Below, one piece after another: positions 38,109 to 64,000 of a stretch of DNA of 64,000 bases. Numbering within the stretch: position 1 is the first letter of the stretch; each line of letters begins with the position of its first letter. The notes beneath the pieces are model-generated. The model worked only from the letters and a program-made list of their open reading frames with translations, was not told the DNA's origin and searched no databases. Both the position numbers and the translations under genes were made by a program. The stretch is from Tubulanus polymorphus (lineage: Eukaryota > Animalia > Nemertea), in assembly GCF_964204645.1 (NCBI RefSeq), contig NC_134035.1:12680451-12744450 (forward strand), given 5' to 3'.

Positions 38109-39265
38109 TGTGGCAGTTTGTCCACGATCTCTCGTTCAGTGATTATCTATTTCTATTTCTTCATTTAAGAAAGGAATACATGTGTTGATTTAAACAAAAT
38201 CAATTCAATTCAACAAACCGGATGTCTCCACGACACTTTGAATTAAATTTCCACTTCAATTCAAAATTTATTGCATCCGTATATATATTGCATCAAAACC
38301 GTCAATACTGATTAAAACCGTCTGATACCGACCAAAAAGCCGTCTAATACCGACCAAAAGTAAAATTAGTACCGACCAAAATTGAACCATTAAAAGTAAA
38401 TCATGATACCGACCAAAATTAACATTATTGCCGACCAAAACCAACCAAGTAAAATGAGAGTAAATTCGGTCCAATGATGACTAAAACTCGCGGTTTTTAG
38501 CCTTGTTATTATTTGAAATCTTTCACTATTGAAAACTGTCTGGTAACTTGACTTTCACTCGCTGGGCGAAGCAGAGACTACTATATTTTAAATTTTTGTT
38601 TTGAATAACAGACTAGCGGGAGAGTTCTATCTTGTCAAATCAGATTCGATTTTCCTAATCATAATTTGCTAGTTCACGTGTAGTCCAAATAAAGAGCACT
38701 GACTTGAATCTGACGCCTGTTCCACAAACGACTGACAAATACTGTCCCACTTTTAAAAATATTATTTCCTATGAATGAGTTTCAGGTTTCTCTTTCAGTT
38801 TTGACATTCATATCAGTTTTTCGAAACAAATTTGCGAGTCTAATCTTCAAATCGTATTAAATCACCCGGCCTTCGGCGGGATTTGATGATTTGACAAATC
38901 GATTTCGAATTTGAAGATGCCGTGATGAATTCAAAAATTAGACCATATCAAATTTGATTATGACAAGATAAAAACGATTTTACTCAAATTTAGAGAGAAT
39001 CCCACAATGATAATAAAAAGTCCGAAAAATGGGGCTACTAAAGTCCATTTTCGGACTTTTTATTATCATTGTGGGATTCTCTCTACATCGCGTCAACACG
39101 GATATAGTGTTCTATACCAATCGTGATCAAATTTGATTTGATAAAATTTGCCTTCCTCAACTTTCAGCCCGATCGGCGAAGGAAACTTCGTGTGCTCCGG
39201 CGGCGTCGATCGGGTCTGAAAAAGTCTGGACTCCAGCCGGCGTTCGTGTTTATTATTTGAGGACT

Positions 39266-39355: not shown

Positions 39356-39769
39356 TTTTATTTCCACAAGAAATTGTAACAAATTTTATATTTATAAAGG
39401 ATGTAACCTTTTAAATCGAACTCGGTTTCAAGCTTTTGCCCAGGTTAGGACCCCAGACGAACGATCGACTGATGCTCGAAGACTGTAGCCTACCGACCGG
39501 AGCCGACTGACTGGAGCCGACCGCAACAGACTGAAAAAAACCAGGCGGCGCTAAATTCGAGAGTCGAGAATCAAGTAATTTACTTTATATGGCCTTAAAA
39601 TTCCACGGAATGGTTCGGCTGGCTACTGGCGCGTATTCAAGTAACAATTGCGGTTTTTCAGAGTTGTTGATATCATTTATACGCCCTATTGAATACGTCA
39701 CCGGCTGACCACAGTATGTATTAAGCATAGGAAACCATTCATTCACCTCGGCTATCTCACACTGTGAAC

Positions 39770-40108
39770 ATGCTTCCGTGGATTCTCCTGGCGATCATGA
39801 TCCTGGCGATCTTCGCTGCGCTCCTGTTCCTGCTTCCTGAGGAACGACGTCTTTATGTTTTATGTGTTACTGTTCGTCTCCGTACTGTCCTGTACTGTTC
39901 TGTGTTAATTAATCCGTTCTATTTTTCAGCATTTAATCCATTCTTTATTTCAGGGCCGATTTCTCTCTCGATTTTTAATATTTTATGGAACAAAACTAAT
40001 ATCCGAAAGCGTCGGCTCTCCTTTGCCGGTCACGTGTCAAGAATGGCAGGTAAGAGTCGGCCAGGAAATGATGTCCCTACGTGCCCTCACACAGGGAACG
40101 CAAACTAG
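39770..40108 (+). CDS. putative orphan hydrophobic small protein, copy A (~112 aa), RTE-derived C-terminus
   Basis: ORF conserved with the inverted paralog at 57365-57754; indels preserve frame; upstream intron 39575-39661 conserved; IRKRRLSFAGHVSRM resembles the RTE ORF tail. Confidence 0.4.
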   Translation: MLPWILLAIMILAIFAALLFLLPEERRLYVLCVTVRLRTVLYCSVLINPFYFSAFNPFFISGPISLSIFNILWNKTNIRKRRLSFAGHVSRMAGKSRPGNDVPTCPHTGNAN

Positions 40109-40253
40109 GACGACAATGCCTCACATCATTATCTGCCTACAGTGTGTACTGAGTGACATCAATGACTGTCAGATCTAGAGCTTAGAATTAAGGCACTAGA
40201 CCATCTGCATGGCGCATATATGGGCCTGATCCAAATCTGCACAAGAAGCATTT

Positions 40254-40510
40254 CAGGGTCCGATCTAAGGAATGAAAGCCACTTGCCCGGGGCAAGCATA
40301 TCTGAAATTTCGCTTGCCCCCCTCCAAAAGCTACTTGCCCTTCACAGGCATTCCGATTGGTGGCACTATCATCCGTTGTATCGAGTGGGAAAAAAGCTTT
40401 GTGACATAAAATTGCACTAGCCCGGGGGACAAATGATAATGATAACCTACTTGCCCTGATGAGAATATACTTGTCCCGGGCAATCGGACAAGTACTAAGA
40501 TCAGACCCTG
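40254..40510. mobile_element. MITE with CAGGGTCTGATCTAAG TIR
   Basis: Copies at 47679-47929, 50675-50925 and 59361-59615. Confidence 0.75.
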
Positions 40511-42409
40511 CATTTCAAATATCGAAAAAGTCATAATTGTAGATATCTCAGCAATCAGTTGTTTGTAATTTACTTAGCTATATTCAAATGGATAGTTGAA
40601 CAATATCTATATGATGATACTCCATGTATCTTAATTGAAAAACCTTCAAAATTCTTTGCATTAAACGTAACAATGTGAAGAAAATAACGTTGATAATGTT
40701 TGAAAATCTCGGGCAAAGTTGGAAAAACTCTTATCTTGATAAATAAAGATTGATTAGCTTAATGTCAAGCTTTACAGAGTGAATCTGTAGGTTTTATGTC
40801 TAGTTTTAATGCTTGAATACAGTTCTGAGTTCACCCATTTGTAGAAATTACATGATACAAAATTTCGGTTTTCCTGTTCAAACAATGTTAATGAAATGAA
40901 ATTAGAGATTGAAATTGAAATTGTTTTATGTCCAGTTTAATGTTTACATTTTGGAGATATGTTATGCAGTTTTTTTTGTATAAACAGAATATCCTAAATC
41001 TCACATTGTCATTTGAATAGTTGATATGATTTGAATGCTTCATATTTCATGAAATAGCCAAGTGTCACTTATGCCCATGCCCGGCGAGTGACTTCATGAA
41101 TTGTCAAATTAATAGTCTTAGACATTCAGACATTCGGGATCATGAAAAATTGATGTAAGGCCTAACGTAGATAGGCGGCGAACTGGGTCAACTTTAAAGA
41201 GTCAAAATGTTAATCAAATTGATTACTTAAAATCTTACGCTTTCCAGAGTATTTGGCCAGGTTTATCTCTGGTTTTAGTGCGGGGAGCCATGGACTCTCA
41301 CAGTTTAGAGTCCATGGTTGTGGGCCATAGACGTTTCCGTCTTAGAGTCTGGTTTCACCATGGACGTATAAACTATAGTATATTGTTTATACGTCCCTGA
41401 TAGGATTGTTTTTGAAATCAGTCCACATGTTTGAGGAACTTAAGTTATGATTCCTCGAGCACAAGCCTGGCATTTTGTATAATTGTTGTATGAGAGTAAA
41501 TATAATTGTTTGAAAGTCTCTATTTTTTTAGTTGATTAGCTTCTCTGAACTTTGTTAGTTCACCAGTCAATGGTTTTCATTATCTTGCAATCCACCCCTT
41601 TTTTCAACACTATATTCCCACCAACATGGTGCAGAGACGAGTATGTCCGCAAAAGATGATAATCGATTATATCATTGGCAATACAGTTGAACACTTTAAA
41701 CCGGACACACTGACACTTGTTGACCGGTTAGAAGCGAGTGTTGAGCTGCCGAAGAATAATTGCAAAATTAACAATCTTTTTGATTGTCACTTTAGCCACC
41801 AGGGGTGGATACAGACCGTAGCCGTATTGCCCAATACGGTCTAAAATTTAAAGCACCCTGCGAAATTCCTCGGCAATGTTTTCGAGAAAATTCTCGGGCT
41901 TTTAAAAACAGCGCTGAAAACATTTAACTGAACGGCCTCCACGTTACGGGGTCAAGGGGTTCGAGGAACTGCTTTAGCTTAGTGGCAGTCCTAAGAAAAC
42001 TACCCAGTGCCACAGTTGTGAGTAAGTGTTTATGTTAATCAGAACTGTGGAACTGGACCCTTGGTTACCAGTCGGCTTACCACTTGTGGATGCTGTACAA
42101 ATTTCCTGATTTGTTAAAAAGTGCATTTCTTAAATATTTTCATGAAAAGTAGGAAAGAAATCAGGGCCTTTAGGGCTATTTAGAAAAAAAATAGCCCCAA
42201 GTAGACTTGCTATGGACCGGGTCGGTCTGACATAATCTAGTAATTGTAAAAAATAGCGATAAAATATACGATTTTTGTTGTATTCAAAAATGTTTGTGTA
42301 TTCAATCACACTTTATACATCGCTAGAACAACAAACAAACTCTTATTGACTCAATATTACAGAAAACACAGTGAAGTAACAAATCAATGACTTTTTAAAC
42401 AAAATCTTG

Positions 42410-43865: not shown

Positions 43866-45434
43866 CAGACGAAATCCCCGCACGCGGGAGACACCCGCAA
43901 AATGTGACCCTAGGCAAGTTTGAGCTGCTGGAATATACTCACGTGCCAGAGGCGCAACTCCCGACGCCACAAGGACAGGTTATTTGGGGTCTCTCTCAGT
44001 TTTTGCGACAGCGCCACGGCGCTGGAGCATATTAAGTCGATCGAACCACCTGGTGTCTTCCAATACCACCACCTAGGGCGTACTCTTTTATGACCTCCGA
44101 AGTCTCCGTCCGAAATCTCCGGTTGGCTCCACACAAAATCCGAATCACACCACCTCGACAGAAAGGAGGTTTCGGAGACTCCAAAAAGTCACGTGACCAA
44201 TAAAAGAGTACGATTGGAGGCAAACGGATTCTCCGATCTGATAAAAGAGTTCGCCCCTAGTGGGCTCAAATTCAAGTTCAAATATACTTTATTGATACTC
44301 ATCATATATACTTAATTGTTACTTTATTCAATACTTTATTGTTCCCAGTACTGCAAATACATCGGATTCCCGCAATTAAGTAGACAGAACACAAATAAAA
44401 TTAAGAATCTTTTAGTATTCAGAAAACAACGTACATGTTATTATTCAACTTTAATTAGCAATGAGATAATTTTTTGCGACACTCACGCATTCCCTTTCTG
44501 GAAAGCTGATCGGCTCTTCCCTGAAAAATTGATTGCTGAATCGACGTTCCGCTAATGATGAATACTATTTTTAGATCCCCTGATTTCAAAATTCAAAAAT
44601 ATAGATTTATATGAACCTTAGGTCTACCTTGTAATTAACAAATTATTCGAAAGCAAAGATCTTGCATTCGAGTTTATTCATTTTAAGCAGTTTCTTTATT
44701 TCAAGCCCCGAATTGATTGTCTAAATCTCTTTGCTCTTCTCGTGACTTGTATTCAATTAAATTTTCTATTCTAATTCTACCATTTGTACGTGAATACTAT
44801 CAACGGTAGCATTTGTTTCTTTTCGTTTCGTTTTTCATAATGATTTTGTAATTTATTTAAATCTCCATTTTATCGCGACGGGTGCTTCCGCTTTTAAACT
44901 GTTCGTTTATTACTTCCGATTTTTTAATCTTCATTAATTCATTCATTCTTTATGACTTCTCTCTCCAAAATCGGTATAATAATGACTTTGCAAAACCACC
45001 TGTCGCAGTATATTTCCTTTTAGAAATATACCTTGTTTGGAAATATATCTGAATCACCATTATGAGTTTTCCGGTTTGCTCGGCTACCCGTACTGGCGGG
45101 GTAGTCTAGAGAGGCCAATGAAAACCCCGGTTTGCTGAACTACCCCTCTTTGCGGGGATGCGGTATGATGTTTGATCTGACAGTTTCAAGTGGTTAATGG
45201 CTGTTTCAAGTGCTTACAACGATGCTTATTACTTCGTGGTACATGGTGGTTTAAAAAAAGATTTCATAATAATACGCTCACCGCGTGGGCTTCGTAGAAA
45301 GACCACTACCTGTGGCCTTCCCAAATTTTAATTGTCCTGTCTGATTTGGTTTCATCCAATTGAGAGACTGCCTTTTCCAGTTAGGGCATTTTTGGATCAC
45401 ATAACTCAGGAAATGACTTACGCTTTTGGGCCCA

Positions 45435-48400
45435 TTCGTCGGTTCCACATGTTTCATTTGAGCTATAGACCACAATGGTGACACCATGATGGTCAGAGAC
45501 TGACCAATTGAGATATCCACGAGTCTGACCACTTGACTTCGAATTTCGGAAATTTTTCAAGTCATGTTTGTTTTCAAACTACTGAAGAATCATTGCAAAT
45601 TTATAAATGGTGTCAAACTAGAAAGGATTCGCCATCAGGACACCCCTGTGCATCCTCTATATATTCAGCATCAGGACCACTCTGAATCAGCATCAGTAAT
45701 TACTGGGTTCGAACCCGGGACACCCCGGTACATCCTCCATTAAGCATCAGGGCCACTCGTTCAAACCCAGTAATTGCTGATACTGATTCAGAGTGGTTCT
45801 GATGCTGAATAGAGAATGTACAGGGGTGTCCCAGGTTCAAACCCAGTAATTACTGATACTGATTCAGAGTGGTCCTGATGCTGAATATATAGAGGATGTA
45901 CAGGGGTGTCCTGAATCTGTTATCAGTTATTACTTTTGTTAAGATATCAACATTTTACCGTACGGTGCTGTCTCTACGCTCATCGTTAGCGGGATTTTTA
46001 TACACTAACGTTAGTCAACTCTGGCAAGCTAAGGTCACGGAGTATAACTGGACAGCACGTCGATTGCCAGAGCTGACTTTAGTTAGTGTATGAAAATCCC
46101 GCTAACGATGAGCATAGCGGCAGCACTGTACGGTCTGGACACCCCTGTACACCCTTTATTCAACATCAGGACAACTCTGAATCAGTATCAGTAATTACTG
46201 GGTTTGAACCTGGGACACCCCTGTACATTCTCTATTCAGCATCAGTACCACTCTGAACCAGTATCATTAATTACTGGGTTCGAACCTGGGACACCCCTGT
46301 TCATCTTTTATCCATCACGACCACTCTGAATCAGTATCAGCAATTACTGGGTTTGAACGCGGGACAGCCCTGTTCATCCTCTATTCAGCATCAGGACCAC
46401 TCTGAACCAGTATCAGTAATTACTGGGTTCGAACCTTAGAGACGATCAGGAGGTCATCGGCTACATTTACCGAAAGCATGAAGAAAATAAAAACAATGAT
46501 TTTTACAAGAGAAACACAAATCTCATGTAATTAATCATGTAATGTTAACACCAAAAGAAGGATACTGGGTGCCACTTTTAAAGGCAAAGTTAACTATTCA
46601 GGACTCTGCTTCTGTATATAAAAATCAAACCGATCATCAGTGGAAATATCTAATTAGCGGGTGGTGAAATATATATGCCGTCACAAAATATTGCCGAAGG
46701 GCACTTAAATTTTAGACCGTACGAACAATGTATTGGGCAATACGGTCTGGATCCGCCCCTGAGTGCTTTAGTGACAATCAAAAAGATTGCTAATTTCGTA
46801 ATTACTCTTCGGCAGCTCAACACTCGCTTCTAACCGGTCAACAAGTGTTAGTGTGTCCGGGTTGAAGGTAAGCTGTATTGCCAATATTCGATTATCATGT
46901 TTTCCGGACATCCTCGTCTCCGCACAATGTTGGTGGGAATATTGGTTTGAAAAAAGAGGTGGATTGCAAGATAACAAAAAACCACTGACTGGTGAACTAA
47001 CAAAGTTCAGACAGAGTAGCTAAACAGATAAAGAATTTCAATCATATTTATTCTCATACAGTGTACAACAATCATACAAAATGCCAGGTTTGTGCTCGAG
47101 GAATTATAACGTAAGCTCCTCAAACACGTGGACTGTATTTCAAAAACAGTCCAACCATGGATGTATAAACTATAAACTAGAGTTTATACATCCATGGTCC
47201 AACCATAGACTCTAAAACAGAAACGTCTATGGCCTACAACCATGGACTCACGAGTCCATGGCTCCCCGCACTAAAACCAGAGATAAACCTGGCCAAATAC
47301 TCTGGAAAGCGTAGGATTAAGTAATCAATCTGATTTACATTTTTACATCATTTTATTTTCACATATCATATTATTAACTTTTAGCTTATTTTCTCAAATT
47401 TTAATAGTAATTTCATTTCTATTACTATGAATGAAATTGTAATAACTCTAAACCACAAAAGTAACATGTAAAGTATTTCGAAGTTTTAATATACAATACA
47501 TCTCCACTACTACTGATTTTATACAATTTGCATCAATAGGAAAATAACAAAAATACACAAAGAATTATAAACTTTTATCCATAAAACACAGAACATTGCC
47601 AAATTTTCCTCGTCTTTAATAGATTTCTTCAAACATTATCAACTAGCTTATTTCACAAATGTTACATTTGAAATAAAGCAGGGTCTGATCTAAGCACTAG
47701 TTCAATTGCCCGGGACAAGTATATTTTCATTAGGGCAAGTAGGTTATCATTATCGCTCATCCACCGGGCTTGTGTAATTCTATATCTCAAAGCTTTTATC
47801 CCACTCGATGCAAGGGATGATAGTGTCACAATCGGACTGCTCATGTAGGGCACGTTGAGGGGGCAAGCGATATTACATATTATGCTTGCCCTGCGGTCGA
47901 ATGGCATTTATTCCTTAGATCAAACCCTGCAAACTATTATAAAGGAAATTCTTCTTGTCCAGACATTACAGGCCCCACACAGACGCGGTTAAACCGATAA
48001 TCAAAACAAAGCTTGGACGATTGACCAATTAGCACTGCATCCACAAGTTATCCTCTATTTTCAACAGGGCCTTAATTAAATCAGTATTTTATGAACGACT
48101 GATAAGCACCAAAGTGAAATTGTTGCTATAAAACTTAACAACTGAAAAGGTGTAAGATATCCCTCGGTTCGTCGGTTCCACATATTTCATTTGAGCTATA
48201 GACCACAATGGTGACACCATGATGGTCAGAAACTGACCAATTGAGATATCCCCGAGTCTGACCACTTGACTTCGAACTTCGGAAATTTTTCAAGTCATGT
48301 TTGTTTTCAAACTACTGAAGAATCATTGCAAATTCATAAACTGACCATCACTGACCACCACTGACAAATTCAAACTCCTTGAATTTGAAAACTATATACC

Positions 48401-51147
48401 GCGTTATGGTGTCAAACTAGAAATGATTCGCCATAAATATTGAGAATTCATAAATTGACCATCACTGACCACCACTGACCAATTCATGCTTCACGAATAT
48501 GAGAACGATATACATGTACGAAGTTACGGTGTCAAACTAGAAAGGATTCGCCATCAGGACACCCCTGTACATCCTCTATATATTCAGCATCAGGACCACT
48601 CTGAATCAGCATCAGTATTCACTGGGTTCGAACCCGGGACACCCCGGTACATCCTCCATTAAGCATCAGGGCCACTCGTTCAAACCCAGTAATTGCTGAT
48701 ACTGATTCAGAGTGGTTCTGATGCTGAATAGAGAATGTAAAGGGGTGTCCCAGGTTCAAACCCAGTAATTACTGATGCTGATTCAGAGTGGTCCTGATGC
48801 TGAATATATAGAGGATGTACAGGGGTGTCCTGAATCTGTTATCAGTTATTACTTTTGTTAAGATATCAACATTTTTACCGTACGGTGCTGTCTCTACGCT
48901 CATCGTTAGCGGGATTTTTATACACTAACGTTAGTCAACTCTGGCAAGCTAAGGTCACGGAGTATAACTGGACAGCACGTCGATTGCCAGAGCTGACTTC
49001 AGTTAGTGTATGAAAATCCCGCTAACGATGAGCATAGCGGCAGCACTGTACGGTCTGGACACCCCTGTACATCCTTTATTCAACATCAGGACAACTCTGA
49101 ATCAGTATCAGTAATTACTGGGTTTGAACCTGGGACACCCCTGTACATTCTCTATTCAGCATCAGTACCACTCTGAACCAGTATCATTAATTACTGGGTT
49201 CGAACCTGGGACACCCCTGTTCATCTTTTATCCATCACGACCACTCTGAATCAGTATCAGCAATTGCTGGGTTTGAACGCGGGACAGCCCTGTTCATCCT
49301 CTACTCAGCATCAGTACCACTCTGAATCAGTATCAGTTATTACTGGATTCGAACCCGGGACACCCCTGTGCATCCTCTATTCAGCATCAGGACCACTCTG
49401 AACCAGTATCAGTAATTACTGGGTTCGAACCTTAGAGACGATCAGGAGGTCATCGGCTACATTTACCGAAAGCATGAAGAAAATAAAAACAATGATTTTT
49501 ACAAGAGAAACACAAATCTCATGTAATTAATCATGTAATGTTAACACCAAAAGAAGGATACTGGGTGCCACTTTTAAAGGCAAAGTTAACTATTCAGGAC
49601 TCTGCTTCTGTATATAAAAATCAAACCGATCATCAGTGGAAATATCTAATTAGCGGGTGGTGAAATATATATGCCGTCACAAAATATTGCCGAAGGGCAC
49701 TTAAATTTTAGACCGTACGAACAATGTATTGGGCAATACGGTCTGGATCCGCCCCTGAGTGCTTTAGTGACAATCAAAAAGATTGCTAATTTCGTAATTA
49801 CTCTTCGGCAGCTCAACACTCGCTTCTAACCGGTCAACAAGTGTTAGTGTGTCCGGGTTGAAGGTAAGCTGTATTGCCAATATTCGATTATCATGTTTTC
49901 CGGACATCCTCGTCTCCGCACAATGTTGGTGGGAATATTGGTTTGAAAAAAGAGGTGGATTGCAAGATAACAAAAAACCACTGACTGGTGAACTAACAAA
50001 GTTCAGACAGAGTAGCTAAACAGATAAAGAATTTCAATCATATTTATTCTCATACAGTGTACAACAATCATACAAAATGCCAGGTTTGTGCTCGAGGAAT
50101 TATAACGTAAGCTCCTCAAACACGTGGACTGTATTTCAAAAACAGTCCAACCATGGATGTATAAACTATAAACTAGAGTTTATACATCCATGGTCCAACC
50201 ATAGACTCTAAAACAGAAACGTCTATGGCCTACAACCATGGACTCACGAGTCCATGGCTCCCCGCACTAAAACCAGAGATAAACCTGGCCAAATACTCTG
50301 GAAAGCGTAGGATTAAGTAATCAATCTGATTTACATTTTTACATCATTTTATTTTCACATATCATATTATTAACTTTTAGCTTATTTTCTCAAATTCTAA
50401 TAGTAATTTTATTTCTATTACTATGAATGAAATAGTAATAACTCTAAACCACAAAAGTAACATGTAAAGTATTTCGAAGTTTTAATATACAATACATCTC
50501 CACTACTACTGATTTTATACAATTTGCATCAATAGGAAAATAACAAAAATACACAAAGAATTATAAACTTTTATCCATAAAACACAGAACATTGCCAAAT
50601 TTTCCTTGTCTTTAAGAGATTTCTTCAAACATTATCAACTAGTTTATTTCACAAATGTTACATTTGAAATAAAGCAGGGTCTGATCTAAGCACTAGTTCA
50701 ATTGCCCGGGACAAGTATATTTTCATTAGGGCAAGTAGGTTATCATTATCGCTCATCCACCGGGCTTGTGTAATTCTATATCTCAAAGCTTTTATCCCAC
50801 TCGATGCAAGGGATGATAGTGTCACAATGGGACTGCTCATGTAAGGCACGTTGAGGGGGCAAGCGATATTACATATTATGCTTGCCCTGCGGTCGAATGG
50901 CATTTATTCCTTAGATCAAACCCTGCAAACTATTATAAAGGAAATTCTTCTTGTCCAGACATTACAGGCCCCACACAGACGCGGTTAAACCGATAATCAA
51001 AACAAAGCTTGGACGATTGACCAATTAGCACTGCATCCACAAGTTATCCTCTATTTTCGACAGGGCCCTAATTAAATCAGTATTTTATGAACGACTGATA
51101 AGCACCAAAGTGAAATTGTTGCTATAAAACTTAACAACTGAAAAGGT
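45435..51147. repeat. recent ~2.7/3.0-kb direct tandem duplication
   Basis: 45435-48150 and 48168-51147 are near-identical apart from repeat-unit copy number; 17-bp filler at the junction. Confidence 0.93.
45638..46435. repeat. ~75-bp B-box-containing repeat array with internal inversion and central palindrome (duplicate at 48556-49431)
   Basis: ggacacccctgtacat...ctgggttcgaacc units in both orientations; ~70-bp-arm palindrome at 45957-46134. Confidence 0.85.
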
Positions 51148-52904
51148 TCAACATGAATGATGAAAATGTACATAGTTTTATTCACACAACAATAATATCT
51201 TAATCGAGGAATCATCATGTAAGTTCCTAATTTACAAACACGAGAACTGTATTACAATAACAGTCTCTAACATAAAGCGTTAAAACTAGAGATGAAACAT
51301 ACCGATTCACTCCAGAAGTCTTGGAGTATCAATTTATCACTCTTAATTTCTTTTTCGTAAACATTACTTACACTTGAAAACTAGAATTTTGCCAACTTTG
51401 CCCCGACTTAAAGATTTTCAAGCACCTTGGCATTAAATACTAACTATTCTGACGTTTTTTCTTCCAGTTTCGAAAACATCAACATAATTATACAATCGGT
51501 AACTAATCGATAACATCAATAACTTAAGTTTATAGCTGTTTTAAATTCTTTCTAAAAAGTAAAATGTATGTACATGATTTTAGATAGTAAGTCTGCCCCG
51601 TAAGTCTACCCCAGTATCAACAACTATTTTTATACTCCATTCCACGCAATCAGGTAAATTTTTTAAACTATGTTACCTATCAGACTGGTCTGAAAAAGGG
51701 TGATATTAGTAAAAAAATCAATACTTTACTACAGAGGTCTTTGCCGCTGCTAGATCTCAGTGTTCATGAGATAAACCATTGTCTTTGCTGCTTCGGTGTT
51801 TATCCTGAATCAGATTTTATAAGATAATCCATTGTCTTTGCTGCGCGAATCAGTGTTAATAAGATACACTATCATCTCTGCTGCTCCTGATAAAATGTTT
51901 TATAGAAATCAACCATCGATTGTAGAAGATTCCATCGTTGAGTGATTAATCCGTCGCTGGCTCCTAAACTTCTCATCTGGGCTTCTGCAGTTTTCATCAG
52001 CAAATGGGTCAACTTGTGTCTTCTTCAGACCATTATTTCCGAGATGTAGTTTGACTGAAACAAAGTGAAGAAAGCAAAACATTTTAGACAGATTTATCAT
52101 AACTTACATGTCATTTCAAATTACAAGCCACCGTGTTTTTCACTTAGTTAATATAGTTATTTCCAAAATCAGAATTAGGTTCATTGACGTCAATTGCCGA
52201 TTTAAACCCCAATAAATAATTGCAGTAGTAGGACTAGTTCATCAATGTTTAAGCTTGGAGTAATCATTTGAAAAATTTATTACTCCAAGGTGCAAGACTA
52301 GAAAAGATAAAAGTTCTAAGATCAGCCATGTGGACAGGTAAATAGATTTCGATGATAATCACTTATCAAATGATATTCATATGAGGCCTGAAATTTCTAT
52401 ATACCGGTAATTTCCATCTAATGAGTTTGATTCTTCTGTGGGTTGTTCAAATCCGTAGATTTCAGATGAGTAGTTGATTTTAAGCTGGTCTCTTTCTTAT
52501 AGTTGAAACTTAGCTGCAATGAGTAAATAAATATATCCTGTAATCACGACATTTAGAAATCATCGTAATAACTCCATGTATATCAAGTTACCTTTTATGA
52601 TTGCTGGTTTCATCATCGACGAGGATCTCCTAAGTTGGTTGGTTTCTGTGCACTGTTTTCTCTAATTGGCAGATTTTTGATGAGTTGTTGACCTCAACCT
52701 CAAGCTCTCGTTTGACTATTCAAGTTGGTGTCCCGTACAAACCTACCACACCTGGCGGGAGCGATACGGCGGTTTTTTTCAAAATCGGAAATCGAAGTAC
52801 AGATATAGTTGCGTGATCGGCGGTCGTTTTTACAGATCTTTTTTTTTTAAGTCCAAGAACATAATTGGTAATTCGGTTCCGGTTCATTCAAACAATCTTT
52901 TATT

Positions 52905-53560
52905 CTGCCTAATTCTGATTTTGGAAATAACTATATTGTTGAAGATAATTTTACAATATTTGGTCTTTTTTTAATGTAACTAGTCCGAAAGTTTACAATG
53001 TTTAATAATTTTGTCTAACTTCAATTTTTTTGGTCGTTTTCACCGTTTAAATAGTCGAAGCACATATTAAGTGACTGATTGGGGTTAACTTTTTTTCTGC
53101 CTAATTTAATACATCGAGATTTTGGAAATAACTATATATTACAATATTTGGTCTTGTTTTCATGTAACTAGTCCGAAAGTTTACAAGGTTGAATAATTTT
53201 ATCTATTTTTTTTCTGCCTTATTTAATACATCAAGATTTTGGAAATAACTATATTTTACAATATTTTGTCTTTTTTTCATGTAACTAGTCCGAAAGTTTA
53301 CAAGGTTGAATAATTTTATCTATTTTTTTCTGCCTAATTTAATACATCGAGATTTAGGAAATAACTATATTTTACAATATTTGGTCTTTTTTTCATGTAA
53401 CTAGTCCGAAAGTTTACAAGGTTGAATAATTTTATCTATTTTTTTCTGCCTAATTTAATACATCGAGACTTTGGAAATAACTATATTTTACAATATTTGG
53501 TCTTTTTTTCATGTAACTAGTCCGAAAGTTTACAAGGTGGGAGAATTTTGTCTAACTTTA
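52905..53560. repeat. ~120-bp AT-rich tandem repeat, ~5 copies
   Basis: ttggaaataactatatt...atgtaactagtccgaaagtttacaa recurs. Confidence 0.9.
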
Positions 53561-56500
53561 ATTTTTTTGTCATTTTCACCGTTTAAATTTGTCTAATTTT
53601 TTAAAGTTTATTGTAGTTTTTCTCGAGTATGTCTGAAATCGAAGTACATAATTGGGAAATTCGATTCCGGTTCATTCAAACTATCTTCCAATCAGTCTGA
53701 AACGGCAAGCTGAAGAAAAGAGCAGAACCTTTTGAGCAGAAAATCCTTTGGAATATCACTGATCATAATTATCATGTCAATTCATATATAAGACCAGCAA
53801 CGTGGATCGATACGTAGATTTTAATAATAGTCTTAAATGATATTTATGAAATTCAACTCATATAGTAATTCATCTATATTCTAAATATCTAAGCAATGGT
53901 TGATTATTATAGTTTAACAACAATTCAACTAAAGCATCTATAGTCATCTCTAGGAATACCAGAGTTACAACAAATTTAATGCATAATCAATCTTATCAAA
54001 TCGTTTTTGAACTGTTTTCTCTTCTATCTTCTTGAAATTCTTGATGTGTCTTTTATTGAAACCCAGGCCCATCATACAGTGCAAACCTGCTAGTAATATT
54101 GGCCTATATATATTTCGATTGTCAGCTAAACCATGTTCGTATTATCAAATTTACTTCATCGTCAGTTAATAAACTTAAGAGATGTTTTCTACCCACAGAT
54201 GGCGACATCTGTACCCAGTGAATGGTATTCTAATCCATTTCATTAATTCTAAATATTGCTCCTAATATATACAATGATTTTGTAATTATGATGATATAAC
54301 TAACTGAAGAGTGAGTGCGCTGCCAGCATTGAGCACACTGATCCTATAAGTAACATGGTTCTACAGATTTAAGAAACCTCGAATCATTCCCACAACTCGA
54401 CAAACCCAGAATTTTGCAAAGCGAGAAGAATTTCAGATCCGGTACGAATTTGAATTAATCACTATTTGAACTGCTAATTTTGCATCAGAGCTTTTGATAC
54501 CTAGCTTAACTAACCCAGAATCCCCCAAAACCTAACTGATTCAACAGATCCCACACACACACATGTGGCCCAGTTAGACGCAGATGACATTGCGCGATAC
54601 AGTCGTCTCATCCACTGTGCAATTTTGAATAAGTTTCACTTATATTCATTACATTGAATTAATTTCAATTAAATTCTAGGTATCTAAGCGAACCATTAAT
54701 TAGTAATCATACTAGCTATATTTTAATAGTCAGTTGAACAATATTTATATGGAGCCTGAAAATCTACATGAGTAGAATTTCAGATGTGGTGAATTCGTCA
54801 CTATTTGAATTCATCAGAAATTAAAGATAAAAAAGCATATTTTTAGTGGTAAATTAGAAATTCCCTTAGCCGAATGGCTATATAATCTTTATTTCCCTTA
54901 TATAGTACACTGTGTATAAGGACCGAAAGACCTTGTTATGACCGGACCTCCCTGGTGCGGTGCGAGTCATGATGCTAGAAAATAGTTTGAAGGAGAGGGG
55001 TTAGTAAAAGAGAGCTATTAGCAAGAGGAATAAGACCTAAGTTTAGGATATCCTGTCAGAATAAGGCTTTCAATCTGACATACACAGTGAAATTGAAATA
55101 TTCCCCCTTCCAAATCCAGGAATGTATTTGTGCACAGTTTCGATCGGAAGTAAATCTGCGTTAAATGATTTTGGCAATATGTATCAAAACTAATACAGCT
55201 GTGTGAAGACACCATAGGTTCACTTAGATACAGATAAATAAATGTGCTCAGATACACATGTATCAGCTTCATTTTAAATGTCCATGGAATTAGAAATAAT
55301 TTCACATAACAATTGAATTAACCTTGATCGATCTAAGTAATACGTTAATGAGTAATTCATCTTAGATTCTAATTTTTAGTTAAACTATATCTAATATGCG
55401 TCACTTGACACACAGTATGGTTTTAGATATTAATTGAATCAGTTAGGTTTGAGTAAATTTTGCCAATAATGAAAAGCATGGCTAGTCGTCGTAAGCGCGG
55501 CAGTTGGCGATACAGAACTGATCAGTCAATGAGACTGATTCCCTTATAGATGTGCTCAAATATATTATATATTTCAGCTATATTTCAATAAATATTTATG
55601 ATATAAAAAGTTTTTGATCTAACATCAAATATTGAATTCATCTTAATTGTGAATATCTAAGCCATTTTTCCTGGCTGTATGCTAATTGTCAGTCAAACAA
55701 CAATTATCATGCGTCGGCCAAAACAAGACGCAGTGTTTCAGGAATGAATTAAATCAATTAAAGCTTTGGTTTATTCTGGATTTATCAAAGTGTTGAGACC
55801 AAATCACTGTTTCATAAAGACCCGTAGTCCATAGTTTTCCCCATATAACACCAGACCTCGATAGAGCCCTAGTCACTATCTTATGAAATTCATTACTGTT
55901 ATGTGTGAGGCAGCACATAGTGTATATTGTTAAGTATGGCCTCAATGGTAATAAATTTATCAATATATTATTTGTAAAGAAAAATCTATCAACCAACGAT
56001 AAAATTTAATTGATATATCTTTTAGTAAAAATTGTCCTATCTAGATCTTGATTGTCCGTTAAACAATAGTCATATGAGGCCTGAAATATCTACGGTACAT
56101 TCGAATAATTTCAAATGTCACATAAGATATTGAATTTACCTTAATTGTACGTACTTACAAAATCTTTTAATCAATAACTGACCAATCTACATTTTAATTA
56201 TCAGACCAAAGAATATTTAAAGGACCTCACTCAATCATTTTGTCTAATATTGTAAATATTCAAGCAATCATTGCCTAGCTATATTTCAATTTACTACCGG
56301 CCACAGAGCCTCAATAAAGTAGTGCGGAGATGGTGAGCTTGACCAGCGCCTATGCATTCTACCCTAGATATGAAAAATCAACTTAGCTTTATGTATGTAT
56401 GTTTTCCTGTTGCCATGCAGGATGAGCCATGCAAGACTGCCAGGTTCGGTTGCGACAGGTCTTTGCGACAGGTGTTTGGTGGTACTTCAAGGTGGAGTCT

Positions 56501-56761
56501 TTCGTGGGCACTTCTGGTGGGCAGATTTTAGATGGGCCTTTTCGGATTAACCTGAAATGAGTGAAAGAACGATATTCTGTAGTTACACAATCCTTTCCGT
56601 ATCACGCATCGTAATTTACATGTGTATCAACTTAACTTTCAATATTGCTAATTCAGTGTTCTTTTTTGGCATCATCTTCGTTGTAGTCACCTTCAGCATC
56701 TTCTTCAACTTCTTGGGAGTCCTGAAATGAAAAAAAGAGAAGAGCGATGAAAACCTGGTAC

Positions 56762-57537
56762 GGAACAAAACTAATGTTCGAAAGCTTTTCAGCTCTCCAT
56801 CGCTGGTCACATGCCGAGAACACCAGACAATGAGCCAGCCAGGAATATACTGCCCTCTACACGCCCTCACACAGAACGCGAAAACCAGAATGACAACGCC
56901 TCACATTCCCCATCTAACTGCAGGATGTACTGGGCGACGTCAGTAACTGACAAACCTGTAAAATTGCACGAAACACAAATAGCACAGTACAACCAGCTTG
57001 ACCGGGTTGAGATTCAGGATCTCAACTAGCACTCAAAAGCGTGACAAGAGACTTCATCCACTGACCGAGGTTGTCACAAGGACACAATGAAACTAGCACT
57101 CATAAGCCGACAAGAGACTTCATCCACTGACCGAGGTTGTCACAAGGACACAATGAAAACTAGCACTCAAACTAGAAATCAAAGAGCGTGACAGTAGAAT
57201 CATCCCTCAGCCGACTCAGAATACCAGAAACAAAGAGCGTGACAGTAGAATCATCCCTCATCCGGGCGGTCACAAGGACACAATGAATGCTAGTAGCGTG
57301 ACAATCCAGTATAACCGCTCCATTTGTATCCCGCGCAATCCCGCAGATATGCCCGTCATTGACATCACTCAGCACACTTTGTAGATAGGTGGGGGCAGTG
57401 AGGCCTCATCATCCTGGTTTTCGTGTTCCGCATGAGGGCGTGTAGAGGGCAGAATTTCCTGACCGACTCTTTGTCTGACATCCTCGACACGTGACCGGCG
57501 AAGGAGAGCTGACGCTTTCGGACATTAGTTTTGTTCC
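56762..57537 (-). ncRNA. candidate long hairpin RNA: ~240-bp arms with a ~300-nt repeat-rich loop
   Basis: 56762-57000 is an inverted copy of 57302-57537; transitions between arms strongly favour G:U on the minus strand. Confidence 0.55.
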
Positions 57538-57754
57538 AGCAAACGTTGAAAATCGACAGAGAAACCGGCCCTGAAAAACAAAACGGATTAAATGCTGAAA
57601 AATAGAACGGATTAATTAACACAGAACAGTACAGGACAGCACAGAGACAAACAGTAACACATAAAACATAAAGACGTCGTTCCTCAGGAAGCAGGAACAG
57701 GAGCAGGAGCGGGAGCGCAGCGAAAATCGCCAGGAGGAGAATCCACGGTAGCAT
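57365..57754 (-). CDS. putative orphan hydrophobic small protein, copy B (~129 aa)
   Basis: MLPWILLLAIFAALPLLLLFLLPEERRLYVLCVTV...; paralog of 39770-40108; upstream intron 57990-57857. Confidence 0.4.
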   Translation of the reverse strand: MLPWILLLAIFAALPLLLLFLLPEERRLYVLCVTVCLCAVLYCSVLINPFYFSAFNPFCFSGPVSLSIFNVCWNKTNVRKRQLSFAGHVSRMSDKESVRKFCPLHALMRNTKTRMMRPHCPHLSTKCAE

Positions 57755-58852
57755 GTTCACAGTGTGAGTGTGCAGAGGTGAATGGCCTATGCTTGTGTAC
57801 ACCGTGGTCAGCCGGTGACGTGTTCAATAGCGCGTGTCAGAATGATATCAACAACTCTGAAAACCCGCAATTGTGTCTCTATTGTTGAATGGATTTACAT
57901 TATGAGGTTCCACCGCCGGGTTTAATACGCGCCAGTAGTCAGCTGAACAATATAGTGGAGGAAGTTTAATAAGGCCATGAAATAAATTACTTGATTCCCA
58001 ACAGCTACTTCCGAATTTATTAGCATCCGCCTGTGTTTTTTTTCTTAAATTCTAGAATAATTTATAAATTATACCGACCGATAGCACTTCCAGTTCAGAT
58101 TCACACCAACACAGGTCTTCCTATCATAGAAACCGCGTAAACATTTACTAATGAAATTAGTTTATTAGTCATGGACAGTTCATGCACCCCGAGATAACTA
58201 CCTCACATGCACGAGGAAAGCGGTCTATTTTAGTCATTGGGGGAAAACCCACTAATACCATGTATTCACGATTATTCATCATTAATACTGTTATCACAGA
58301 ATCCCGTCAATAGACAGATTTTCATTTTAAAAAAAACTCCTCGATTCAATTGAGGGGAGATATATGAAGCATTTTTAATTGCTTGGAGACGCGCATAAGT
58401 TTATGCATTGGAGAGGGCAGATTGAACCATTCCTAAAGAGCATTCGCTCGTATCCAGTCGCAACTATACTTGTCTTTGGTGAACTTTTTCCAAAAATGAA
58501 TTCCCCACTGTGCACGGAGTGAATAAAACATCTAAAACATTTTCAGTCGATAAGAGCACAAAAAATTCAGCAAACTAAAAGACTGGAGTATTTTCGATGA
58601 TATTTGCAGTTTATATTTCTACCATACGAAATAAATGTAACAGACAGATCAATATATATCCCCTAATGCCCCGAAACAAAATAACCGAATCTAGTTTAAT
58701 AATGAACACTTCCACAGGCGACGAAAATCTTCAAAATTCAATATAGGACATGATAAACAAACAGTGTTAAAATAAAACCAATCAGTTTTAAATTTGTCAC
58801 TTAATAAATTAAGTCAGCATGATCATTTAATATTGAAACAATGATTGTATAA

Positions 58853-61800
58853 CTACGGTTTCCATTGTTGTTGTTGACCTTGACCTTTATCGACGATTAT
58901 CGTCCGTCCATCATCGGTTGCCGACGACGCTAAATCGCGTAACGCCAAATCGCTGGAATACATCAGAAACTCGTCGAGCGTTCGTTCGGTGCAATTAGCT
59001 ATAAACCGGATAAACGGCCGGATGTCTCCGTCGTTCGCCGTTTGTAAATGTTGGTAGTATTCGTGTTTTTCGTCGACCTTGATGATGACCGGGGGAAACC
59101 CGGCTTGCATCAGGATCAGATTCATCAGCAGTCGAGACGTGCGTCCGTTACCGTCGTAGAACGGGTGAATGAACACGAGTTTATAGTGAGCTAAAGCGGC
59201 GTGTTCGATCGGATGTAGATCGGTCGTCGATTCCACAGAGTTCAACCATTCGATGAATTCACGCATTAATTCGAGAATGGCGTTGGCGCTCGGTGGCGTG
59301 TGATCACCTACGTATACCTGTAATTATAATCATCGTCTTCAGTTTAGTATATCGTATATACAGAGTCCGATCTAAGCACTCGTCCGATTGCCCGGGACAA
59401 GTATATTTCTATTAGTGCCAGTAGGTTATCATTATCACTTGTCAACTGGATGAGTGCAAATTTATATCTCAAGGCATTTATTTTCCCGCTCGAAACAACG
59501 GTTGATTATGCCACTCGAGTAGGGCTAGTTGATTTTTGAGGGGTCAAGTGAAATTTCAGATATGCTTCCTTCCTCCCCCGGGCAAGCGGCTTTTAATTCT
59601 TTAGATCAGACCCTGTATATAGGTCTCGCTAAACCTAAGACCCCTATACATAAGACCTAACATGTCTTAGGTTTTAGGTTTAGGGGTTCTTAGGTTTAGT
59701 ATATCATATATAGGTCTCGCTTAACCTAAGACCCCTAAACATAGGACCTAACAGGTCTTATGTTTCATTTATAACGCACGCACTAGATGATGGGTCAGTG
59801 ATATTGTGTAATGCTTGATGCTTATGAAAAAATGGCTGATTTTGCGTACAGGGAGAGGGGGGTATGAAAAATAAAGAATTTTATGCACATGCAATATGGA
59901 ATGATCCCTATTTTACCTGTGTATTGCGTAATCTACCGGCTTCTATCGGATCGACGTAGCCTAAAACACGTTTATGTATTTCTAGTAAATCGGTGACGGT
60001 GATCGCGCCGACGCGACGTATCAGAGTACTGTTTATATAACTCAACGCATCGTCTAAACCGAGTATCTCGTTGTGTTCGAGGATACTCTTCCCGTGGACG
60101 GCCATACGCGTCTCGACGATCGCGCGAGTCTGCGCGAGGGACATCGTGTTGCCTTCGATCGCGTTCGTGTGATAGATATGCAGGAAGAAGCTCTCTCGTT
60201 TCGCGCGCCGCAGCCCCGGGTGATTCTCCGGGATGTTGTAGAATTGTTCGCGTTTGGCGTCGATTCGCGTGAACGTTTTGCGGTCCATCTCGCGTACGAT
60301 CGGGAGTATGCGTTCCTGATTGGTTAGAGCTCGCGTGTGCTGCGGACTCACCGATACGGCCTTCGTGTACATCTGTGCCGCTAATAACAGATCGTTCTGT
60401 TCGTCGCCGTGTTCCTCTAGATACTCGCCGTACTCGACCAGAACCTCGACGTGTCGCGGGTCTAAGCTGTACGCGTGCTGAAACAGTCGCAGCGCTTTGT
60501 TGTGTTTGCCGTGCATTTCGAAATCGAGAGCTAAATTCAGCGCCGATAATGCTTCATTCGTTACTTCTGAAATACAAAATGACGATATGAAAAAACAAGA
60601 AACAGAACTGAATTAACACATTCACTGCCACAGTGCTGTTTTTTTCACAGTAGTTTCTTTTAACTACAAGTAGGGTCCAAATTATATGAAAAAGTGTAAG
60701 GCTAAAACGGTCAAGTTTGTTGTAATCCTCATTGCAGAAATGAAGTACAGTCAACCCCTGATATACCGCCCACATCGGTGCGGAACGATTTTGGCGGTAT
60801 AGAGAGTATGGCGGTATATCCGGGGTGTTTAACTATGTATTTGTATTGAGATGTACATTAAGAAAACCTGGCAGTAGGCAGAGGGTGGCGGTAATAATGT
60901 GAGGGCGGTATATCGGGGTTTGACTGTTACACCAGAAATATGTGTTAAACTTTTTTGTGAAAGTGGGCCAAGTTGGCAAAAGAGCTACCACATAGTCAGC
61001 CATTTTTCAAAATTGACCAATGAGCATTAACAAACAAGTAGAGTTTGTTCACAGTGTCAGCCAATCAGAAACTATATCATTCCGTGAGCAAGAGAGTTAA
61101 AAAGAAGATATATCGTAGTGGCCAAGATGACAGAACCGAAACTACCTCATAGTCGGCTGTGAATGGATTTAAGAGCATCGTTCTAACTGTAGCCACAACT
61201 TTAGCAACGAGACACTGAACCCGGTTGATAAGTAGCGCCACCTACCTTTACTCGCGCGTGTTTTCCGTTTCAACGCTAACGTCGTGTGGAAGAAATCCTC
61301 GTTTAGAGCGTCATTTCTGAGGTCTCCGCCGAACCAGGCTTTAGCGGCAAACGCGTTTGAACCGCGTCGTTTATCCGAGAAATACGTGATGTCGAATTCG
61401 ATGAACTTTGGTAAATTCGCGACGACGAACATGACGACCGTCGCTATCGAAACACCCGAGAAAAATACGATCAAAAACGTCATTGGAGAATTGATGATCC
61501 CCGCGGCGGGGGAGGAACAATTCATCACCGGTGACGACGATGAGTCGTTCGATGATGTCGAGATTGTGCGCCCGCTATTGTTTCGGGATTTCGTCCTTTT
61601 TTTCGTGTTTATTTCTCCGTTAGATTCACCGTGTTCCCGGTGGTCCATCCCACCGTGTTCCCGGTGGTCCATCCCACCGTGTTCCCGGTTGTCCATCCCA
61701 CCGTGTTCCCGGTTGTCCATGCTGCAGTGTTCCCGGTTGTCCATGCTGCAGTGTTCCCGGTGGTCCATGCTGCAGTGTTCCCGGTGGTCCATGCTGCAGT

Positions 61801-61936
61801 GTTCCCGGTGGTCCATCCCACCGTGTTCCCGGTGGTCCATCCCACCGTGTTCCCGGTGGTCCATCCCGCAGTGTTCTCCATCCACCAAGCCTTGGTCCCC
61901 GTACTCGTTCACTGATATCCCTACAGACATCGTCAT
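58853..61936 (-). CDS. FICD: protein adenylyltransferase FICD/HYPE, 3 exons, ~601 aa
   Basis: Exons 61936-61246, 60566-59917, 59317-58853 in frame. TM ([19 protein letters not shown]), TPR region, inhibitory TNAIEGN, Fic motif [12 protein letters not shown]. Confidence 0.95.
60748..60926. mobile_element. Tc1/mariner-pogo-type MITE in FICD intron
   Basis: ta-cagtcaacccctgatataccgccc...gggcggtatatcggggtttgactg inverted termini. Confidence 0.7.
61628..61880 (-). repeat. 24-bp coding repeat, ~10 copies of (G/C)(G/S)MD(H/N)REH, in FICD N-terminus
   Basis: Directly visible in DNA and translation. Confidence 0.92.
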
Positions 61937-64000
61937 TATCACAATCGCTTTAAAACATCTTACATCGAATACAGCAGTTGATACAGCTTACACCAGGTTA
62001 CTCATCGGTGATAACTATGAGTCCCTCGTAAAGGTGTTTGACTACAGGGGGTAGGCCTTGGCTTCTCTAGCGCAAGTCCACTTCACTTGAATGACATGAC
62101 CCTCAGCAGGATCAGAATGTTTTTTGTGAATTTGTTAACTCGACTTGACCTGAGGCAGTTCGACACGAAGTTCCACCCTTTGATTTTTTAGGTCGATCTT
62201 ACCAAACTAAATTAAACGTATGTATATGTTCAAACACGGACTCCTTAACAACTGAATATGCGAAAAGATCATTTGAAACATACACGGCTGTCAATAAGTA
62301 CACGTAATCGCAATTGACAATCATATGGCAAAGTTGTATTGTCATCGCTGTACGAAATACATTGAGAGGTTCGAATCCGAAATTTGTGAATATTTGCTTT
62401 TCCGAAATATGATTATGTTTTCGAAATAGTAAGTCTATGAATGACTGTTTTGCTATTCATTTGATTCTCAATTTGGCTGTTTGTTTTTCGAACTAACCAT
62501 AAGGAATGAACGTCGTGACATCAACAGGGACTGATTAGATTAGCATTATGGCAATAGGGAGTTCAGGACTTCATGTGCAGGTAGGCATGAAAATCCCTGA
62601 TGCCTGTAGATTATCACTGCAAAGTCCCGAGAATAACTAAGTAGCGCAATAAACCGATTTTAGTATATTTTTCAAATGAGACTTTTCTAGTTTTTTCTAT
62701 GAAATTTCAAACAATTTCTTATCAATATTTTTACTTCACATTATATTCCGCTGTTATTGATATTTGACAATTACTGATATCGTGCAGTTTTTAACACCGG
62801 ATCAATTATGCTCTAGTAATTACCACCGATCGTACGACTTCCGGGTTCTGTCTGGAAACCAGGAAAAAATATACCCGACTCATCGATTATTTTGAGGATT
62901 TTCATGCCATAAAAAAATTGATGAATTCAAAATACGTTTAGTAAGTGTTTTTTGCATAATCTATTTGTCGACATGAAATAATGCTAAACGGCATTTTTAC
63001 GAAGTGGCAGCTTACATACCCGGTACATATACGATATGACATGCACTGATCATGTAGACAGCGGGTGATCTACATATAAACATCGAGGCACTGTACAAAG
63101 AAGAGCCTTTTTCATTTACAGAATAAAGATAATGGCAAGAAGTCGAATATGTCTCCATTACTCGGGTTTAACTACACTATTCCGTGCTCCAGTAAGTAAT
63201 ATTCCGTCAGATACGGGTAACAGATACGGGTATAAGTTTGTCTCTTTTTCTTTTCATCTTTCGGATCGTGGTTTCCCAGACACAAGTATTGATTGTCATT
63301 TAAACTCACGACGGATCACGCCGGTCTTTATTGTCGCCGGAATTGATTATGTTTGATTGAAAGTTACGTGTGAAATCCTTAATTGAAACTAGCAAACAAA
63401 GTGTTGTCTAGCTACAATCATTGAAGAATTGCCCTGGCAATCAAACTAACACAAACTTAATCTCCTCTTCACTAATTTCAAACAACTCTTCAATATTTCA
63501 TGAAATTTCACTGCATGCTAAGGATGGCGTTTGGTATTTTAGGAGCCAGACTAAGGGCCTTGTTAAAATTTCGCTTGAGCTGTTGGTTGAATATTATAGA
63601 ATATTTGTATTTGTAAATGTGAACGGCAGGATCGGTTTGAATTTTACTCGACTTGATGGCCACCTACTGACAATCCATAGTTCTTCTCCCCATGGCTTTA
63701 GATTTAATCGTTTGTGAATGTCAATTTTTCAATCGGGGCCATAAAATTGATATACACCCTTGACAGGTATCCAGCGTTAAATAGCCTAACCTCTTAAAAT
63801 CAATTTATATAGTATGGTAGCCAATTATATGTACCGGAAGTGTTGTCTAGCTACAATCATTGGCCCGAATTGCAAAATCATTCTCATGTCATTTCATAAT
63901 GTAATAAGTTTCATTATTGCCCCGGCAATCAAACTAACACAATCATTATAATTGCCGGCACGATCATGTTTTAATCGAATGCTTCATTATATTTTCGATT

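Follow-up and report, generated by a model that had tools for sequence, protein, structure and literature searches.

The fold-back at 56762–57537 of the window (the whole stretch of 64,000 nucleotides analysed here) is one passive copy of an approximately 0.87-kb hairpin module carried by a dispersed repeat family, and the sense (minus-strand) transcript of this family probably contains a long, imperfect, wobble-rich RNA duplex that has been kept by selection. The earlier note had taken the fold-back for a single hairpin-RNA (hpRNA) gene at this locus, a reading that we had to abandon in view of at least 316 candidate matches to one arm in the genome and the same bias in all 34 copies examined. 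Its further proposal, that pairing is under selection in a transcript and that the structure is not a neutral palindrome, stood in part: the pairing is strand-specific and looks selected in the family, but not at this locus. Selection for RNA pairing in the source copies of the family is thus the best explanation, short of proof. The parts of the hairpin are as follows.

57302–57537, minus strand: 5′ arm of the hairpin in the minus-strand RNA (arm 2 of the earlier note), from inverted-repeat search, alignment and folding
56762–57000, minus strand: 3′ arm of the hairpin in the minus-strand RNA (arm 1 of the earlier note), 64% G+T on this strand
57001–57301, minus strand: inner part of the hairpin (formerly called the loop), made of 66-bp tandem units and related units
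56715–57590, minus strand: conserved module, that is, the hairpin with about 45–50 nt on each side, from a sliding window between subfamilies
56722–56761, minus strand: near-invariant 40-nt stretch directly 3′ of the hairpin, with a GT start and an end consisting of a pyrimidine run and CAG

The repeat search recovered the fold-back where it had been proposed, as three collinear inverted blocks spanning 56762–56980 and 57322–57537. The blocks measure 24, 57 and 134 nt and are 96, 79 and 73% complementary, respectively, the outermost lying at 56762–56785/57514–57537 (96%) and the innermost at 56847–56980/57322–57455 (73%). Global alignment of 56762–57000 with the reverse complement of 57302–57537 gave 176 matches, 3 gap columns, 15 transversions and 45 transitions, and the Watson-Crick identity between the arms is 76%. 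In a minus-strand RNA, 34 of these transitions give G:U pairs and 11 give A-C mismatches, exactly as counted by eye before, and the bias survives proper alignment (binomial test, 34 versus 11, p = 0.0008).

Folding of both strands revealed a marked asymmetry, with −428.7 kcal/mol (z = −19.9) for the minus-strand RNA and −324.8 kcal/mol (z = −13.1) for the plus-strand RNA. About half of this gap is a composition effect, as shuffled minus-strand sequences also fold better by about 51 kcal/mol, and the remaining half or so is sequence-specific. The predicted minus-strand fold is a nearly continuous imperfect duplex of 309 pairs, 17% of them G:U, with helices of up to 28 pairs. Moreover, the inner 301 nt (57001–57301) are structured on the minus strand only (z = −3.1 versus +0.5 on the plus strand), where they prolong the duplex with 20 G:U pairs and do not form a true loop. 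With DNA folding parameters, the two strands differ little (−179.5 versus −158.8 kcal/mol) and the inner part loses its extended duplex. That the strand gap shrinks so much when DNA parameters replace RNA parameters indicates that the asymmetry is mainly a property of RNA. Rfam gave no match at the gathering threshold over the whole window and none at E values up to 1 over 55500–58600, and neither a hammerhead nor any other RNA family known to Rfam overlaps the hairpin.

Copies were searched for in the source genome (268 Mb in 77 contigs). For arm 1, at least 316 candidate matches were found, of which the 40 that were scored are all 97–100% identical and lie on many chromosomes; the arm-2 peptide gave 395 candidates. 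The full hairpin occurs at the same place in 33 further copies, and homology over the whole module and over the whole repeat unit that carries it was found on many chromosomes. Hairpin length is 773–779 nt in 25 of the 30 copies measured. Three other loci (L016, L025 and L026) have hairpins of 1004–1050 nt with 230–270 extra nt in the inner tandem-repeat part, and in two (L020 and L022) the inner part is shorter by 50–70 nt, so that the inner array varies in unit number. The same arm bias was present in 34 of 34 copies, with 30–36 G:U-type versus 7–13 A-C-type transitions. Such an identical bias in all copies examined shows that it was inherited from the family ancestor rather than made at this locus. 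The arms thus diverged before the family spread, and their divergence carries no information on selection at this particular locus. In practice, every locus of the hairpin family will resemble a candidate hpRNA gene, and these loci should be treated as one family-level finding.

The module lies within a larger composite unit, for which the following features were mapped.

45055–58388, minus strand: composite repeat unit of 13.3 kb carrying the module, from copy comparison and terminus mapping
58354–58388, plus strand: sharp right terminus of the unit, with 28 such termini in the genome
45058–45607, plus strand: abundant 550-bp element (837 candidates), whose outer end is the left end of the unit

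Both ends of the unit are sharp (58388 and 45055–45058) and are not inverted repeats. The right terminus was sharp in nine copies, beyond which the DNA differs among copies with three recurring flank types, and no inverted partner was found near the 28 right termini. Copies of the 550-bp element are 95–98% identical, and its outer end coincides with the left end of several unit copies. No target duplication was seen in the two copies in which both ends were compared, and inspection of the unit ends found no Helitron-type signals. Between paired ends the unit varies in length from about 9 to 18 kb, and the hairpin sits 0.85–1.6 kb inside it, not at an end. Together with the arm-1 candidates, the 28 right termini on many chromosomes mark the repeat as one with many dispersed copies. 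The unit has no coding capacity for its own movement and fits no recognisable non-autonomous class; among four unit copies scanned, no ORF of at least 110 aa was found besides the small ORF described below. It resembles SVA-like composite non-autonomous repeats in its length, in the absence of a long ORF, in being assembled from several repeat pieces and tandem arrays, in its variable length and in having another short element at one end; unlike these, no poly(A) tail, target duplication or proof of retrotransposition was found in the unit.

Several further repeats were observed in and around the unit. It contains a 2-kb direct duplication (46137–48151 and 49133–51147, 97.5% identical) preceded by 76-bp tandem-repeat arrays (for example, 49057–49432), and an array of approximately 116-bp units (53090–53554, 95% identical), the copy number of which varies between family members. 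A repeat of about 250 bp, 72–80% identical among its occurrences (40251–40520, 47679–47808, 50662–50928 and 59361–59615), is found inside the unit, beside a diverged paralog in the window (paralog A, below), and outside the unit near a gene for a protein resembling FICD. Elsewhere in the genome, a reverse-transcriptase ORF of the non-LTR type with a YADD motif lies at about 340–2000 of locus L039 (G000:C1:6013000-6018000), just past the right end of the C1 unit copy, and is seen incomplete at the end of that stretch.

The coding and putative transcript features next to the hairpin, and the paralog used for comparison, are as follows.

57365–57802, minus strand: small ORF, 145 codons as listed, with two hydrophobic segments and a likely start ATG at 57754
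57858–57991, minus strand: putative intron upstream of the ORF, with GT..AG-like signals common to paralog A
39534–40176, plus strand: paralog A, a shortened member of a diverged subfamily, with putative intron, ORF and one arm

On the minus strand, the order of elements is the terminus at 58388, the GT..AG segment, the small ORF, the hairpin and the 40-nt near-invariant piece. The stop codon of the ORF (57367–57365) is located inside the 5′ arm, the outer 173 nt of which constitute the 3′ end of the ORF and give its last 58 codons and the stop. In a minus-strand transcript, the hairpin module would therefore follow and partly overlap the small ORF. Two signals previously invoked in favour of this strand were found again: GT..AG-like signals are present near 57991 and 57858 and are common to the paralog at 39534–40176, in keeping with a putative intron, and a minus-strand AATAAA lies downstream, the nearest one (55775–55770) being about 1 kb from the hairpin. 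From its GT start and pyrimidine-CAG end, the 40-nt stretch at 56722–56761 may be a mini-intron.

In most of 150 family copies, the small ORF stays open over about 150 aa. Over the first 88 codons, it differs from paralog A by 11 synonymous and 11 non-synonymous changes, with a dN/dS of 0.31 (p = 0.01). It matched no Pfam family above the cutoff, a word search found no relatives in a large protein collection, and a feature search of the ESM Atlas returned noise only (best score, 0.80). The repeat family may thereby code for a genuine small membrane protein. Past the right end of the unit, exons of a Fic-domain protein with TPR repeats (FICD-like, 58853–60516) lie on the minus strand, as does the presumed hairpin transcript; they end about 465 bp from the terminus, and read-through into the repeat is conceivable. 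Farther on, at 61169–62054, overlapping ORFs on both strands cover a tandem array that encodes MDHREH(G/C)(G/S) repeats and has a GC content of 52–55%.

Homology of paralog A to the family ends at 40176, the start of another repeat, and A has a small ORF of its own at 39764–40108 (plus strand). We considered A as an unpaired control for the arm bias and dropped it, since its nearest relatives carry the inverted arm: two of the four closest ones keep it, 430–450 bp away. A similar bias in the A lineage (17:8) is thus uninformative, because this lineage also carried the hairpin. Just upstream of A, at 38988–39088, an inverted repeat of 41 nt was observed, nearly perfect at 98% and with 19 nt between its halves. 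As for the origin of the arms, which had been described as diverged inverted copies of an RTE-derived segment, translation yields a LINE-like C-terminal peptide motif in both of them, as ..LSFAGHVSRM.. and as ..LSIAGHMPR.., which makes an RTE-derived segment a candidate source. A motif scan found no independent LINE copy with the arm motif in the window or in 46 loci.

Comparison of subfamilies revealed that conservation is concentrated on the module. Between the subfamilies designated 'long' and 'short', the module (56715–57590) differs by at most 5% and its flanks by 10–58%, and the hairpin alone differs by 1.4–2.8% and the flanks by 7–15%; the 30 loci compared were picked by similarity to arm 1, which inflates the conservation of arm 1 and has no direct bias on the inner part or arm 2. 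Young long copies, in contrast, diverge evenly in the hairpin and the flanks alike (1.4–3.8%), in keeping with copies that decay neutrally once inserted. When the A subfamily is compared with the B subfamily, conservation is lower in the arms (73–77%) than in the ORF (92%).

The direction of the arm changes was determined by polarisation with paralog A. G:U-type gains on the minus strand stand at 16:6 in the lineage of the 3′ arm and at 14:3 in that of the 5′ arm, and in both arms they comprise A>G (14) and C>T (16). The composition of the minus strand reflects the same tendency locally: G+T amounts to 58% in the hairpin and 64% in its 3′ arm, versus 47–54% in other stretches of the unit, and in the ORF part adjoining the hairpin C exceeds G on the sense strand. 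The G+T excess being local to the hairpin, a transcriptional mutation skew acting on the whole unit is unlikely. In the 34 copies, A>G and C>T are not in excess among private changes (arms, 18:24; flanks, 50:43), and hence there is no sign of ongoing editing that accumulates with each round of copying. None of the variants present in at least five copies disrupts pairing (5:0 at Watson-Crick pairs, with two further changes from G:U to Watson-Crick), and the ratio of keeping to breaking at Watson-Crick pairs is 16:12 for private transitions versus 9:7 for all shared variants, which is not significant. Two-sided (compensatory) changes were found at 2 of 309 pairs across the copies compared; they are nearly absent because these copies resemble one another too closely. 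With A as the outgroup, subfamily differences outside the arms offered only 4 usable transitions, and hence no power.

These data have to be weighed against explanations in which the RNA duplex was never selected. An unlikely, though by no means negligible, alternative is that the hairpin is a neutral relic, that is, an old inverted duplication whose arms drifted in the source copies under strand-asymmetric mutation, produced either by transcription-associated asymmetry or by RNA editing fixed through reverse transcription. Indeed, on what is presumed to be the sense strand the biased changes are A>G and C>T, the direction in which transcription-associated asymmetry is known to act in mammals. 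The ratio of pair-breaking transitions to transversions between the arms (11:15) is about the neutral one seen in private changes, so that the counts can be read equally well as too many G:U-type changes or as too few of the others, and the pair statistics within the family are not significant. However, the skew is restricted to the hairpin, the rest of the unit being at 47–54% G+T and the adjoining ORF part at C>G, and a threefold bias exceeds known transcriptional asymmetries. Editing fares no better, as private changes without an A>G excess leave no footprint of it and the 16 C>T changes are impossible by ADAR-type editing. Moreover, neutral drift leaves unexplained why the module is 5–10 times better conserved than its flanks between subfamilies.

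The strand on which the hairpin lies, shared with the intron-like segment and the ORF, would also suit a single-copy host gene selected at this locus, with siRNAs regulating a target such as paralog A. We regard this as scarcely credible, since hundreds of copies with the same hairpin and bias refute uniqueness, the locus lies inside a 13.3-kb repeat unit with defined ends, young copies diverge evenly in and outside the hairpin, and paralog A offers no site to the hairpin 21-mers (below). Very improbable, too, is that the hairpin works at the DNA rather than the RNA level, as a single strand or a cruciform, for example, when the unit replicates or transposes. G-T is the least destabilising DNA mismatch, and the non-inverted unit ends without target duplication in two copies recall some rolling-circle elements, but the little strand difference and the missing inner duplex obtained with DNA parameters, the position of the hairpin well inside the unit and the termini devoid of Helitron-type signals on inspection all speak against such a role. 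We therefore favour a selected RNA duplex in the family.

The data establish the copy number, the inherited nature of the bias, its strand specificity and the local conservation; transcription, selection as the cause and what the RNA does are inferred. The arm divergence and its one-sided G:U bias arose in ancestors of the family. On the favoured reading of a selected RNA duplex, source copies would have been selected to keep the RNA duplex, G:U-making transitions being tolerated and pair-breaking changes purged, so that the DNA palindrome was left to erode while the RNA stayed paired. Single copies, including the one in the window, would now decay neutrally. The present analysis adds the polarised counts, the control for local skew, the contrast between private and shared variants, and the borders of the module. 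It also adds that the module overlaps a small ORF under constraint, what kind of copy paralog A is, and where the 13.3-kb unit ends on either side.

What the RNA might do can be stated only tentatively, and two roles appear about equally likely, each of them possible rather than probable. The duplex could supply long double-stranded RNA to a small-RNA pathway of the Dicer type that acts on the family itself, or it could work in cis, as a structure within the 3′ part of the small-ORF transcript, and influence the stability, localisation or propagation of this transcript. None of the hairpin 21-mers is perfectly antisense to its own ORF region or 5′ arm (8 are with at most one mismatch), and none is antisense to paralog A with at most one mismatch. 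This lack of perfect antisense 21-mers against the own ORF and paralog A speaks against a simple siRNA model, and no siRNA target appears evident among these two sequences. The notion of a 'gene B' (the hairpin) silencing a 'gene A' (the paralog) was accordingly set aside as unsupported. More speculatively, and with rather low probability in our estimation, the family could be a gene-like mobile unit in which one transcript combines a small membrane protein with its own wobble-buffered hairpin, kept in source copies and either tuning its own expression by RNAi or engaging the double-stranded RNA machinery of the host; the G:U wobbles would then preserve the RNA duplex and remove an unstable or silencing-prone DNA palindrome.

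In form, the module is close to the hpRNA loci of Drosophila. Loci such as hp-CG4068 and the Nmy/Tmy suppressors of D. simulans reportedly give rise to Dicer-2-dependent endo-siRNAs. As in these, a long inverted repeat, with the minus strand presumed to be sense, folds into an extended hairpin on the transcribed strand; the repeat would be contained in one RNA with a strand-specific fold, and one arm stems from an inverted duplication of a coding segment. However, the Drosophila loci are single or few host loci with defined targets in trans and proven small RNAs, whereas the present hairpin is a module of an interspersed repeat with hundreds of copies, described from sequence, and is not a discrete host locus. 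It also differs in lying in the same transcript unit as the ORF that it partly copies, in having no evident target and in the Watson-Crick identity of only 76% between its arms. G:U-rich stems had been cited as typical of Drosophila hpRNAs; our literature search found no paper stating so in the library covered.

Inverted pairs of transposable elements in transcripts, such as inverted Alu pairs in 3′ UTRs, likewise form long imperfect double-stranded RNA, and the present hairpin is similar to them as an imperfect duplex of a few hundred bp, derived from a transposable element and situated in what would be the 3′ part of a transcript. Unlike those pairs, which result from chance independent insertions, are not conserved as a unit and have no selected wobble bias, it is conserved as a module with a wobble bias that looks selected. 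The nearest parallel to the wobbles themselves is found in engineered plant hairpins with 18–26% G:U pairs, in which the hairpin RNA still forms and RNAi is still induced, although the DNA no longer contains the perfect inverted repeat that attracts self-silencing (PMC9263138). Here also, wobbles (17% versus 18–26%) keep the RNA duplex and break the DNA repeat. In the transgenes, the changes were designed, confined to one arm and all C-to-T (PMC9263138), whereas those in the present hairpin are natural, affect both arms and mix A>G with C>T, and a benefit from loss of the palindrome can only be presumed. Should the hairpin indeed be under selection and be processed, the engineered G:U hairpins would have a counterpart in nature, and the family would represent a repeat that sustains a long double-stranded RNA of its own, in a group of spiralians about whose small RNAs little is known.
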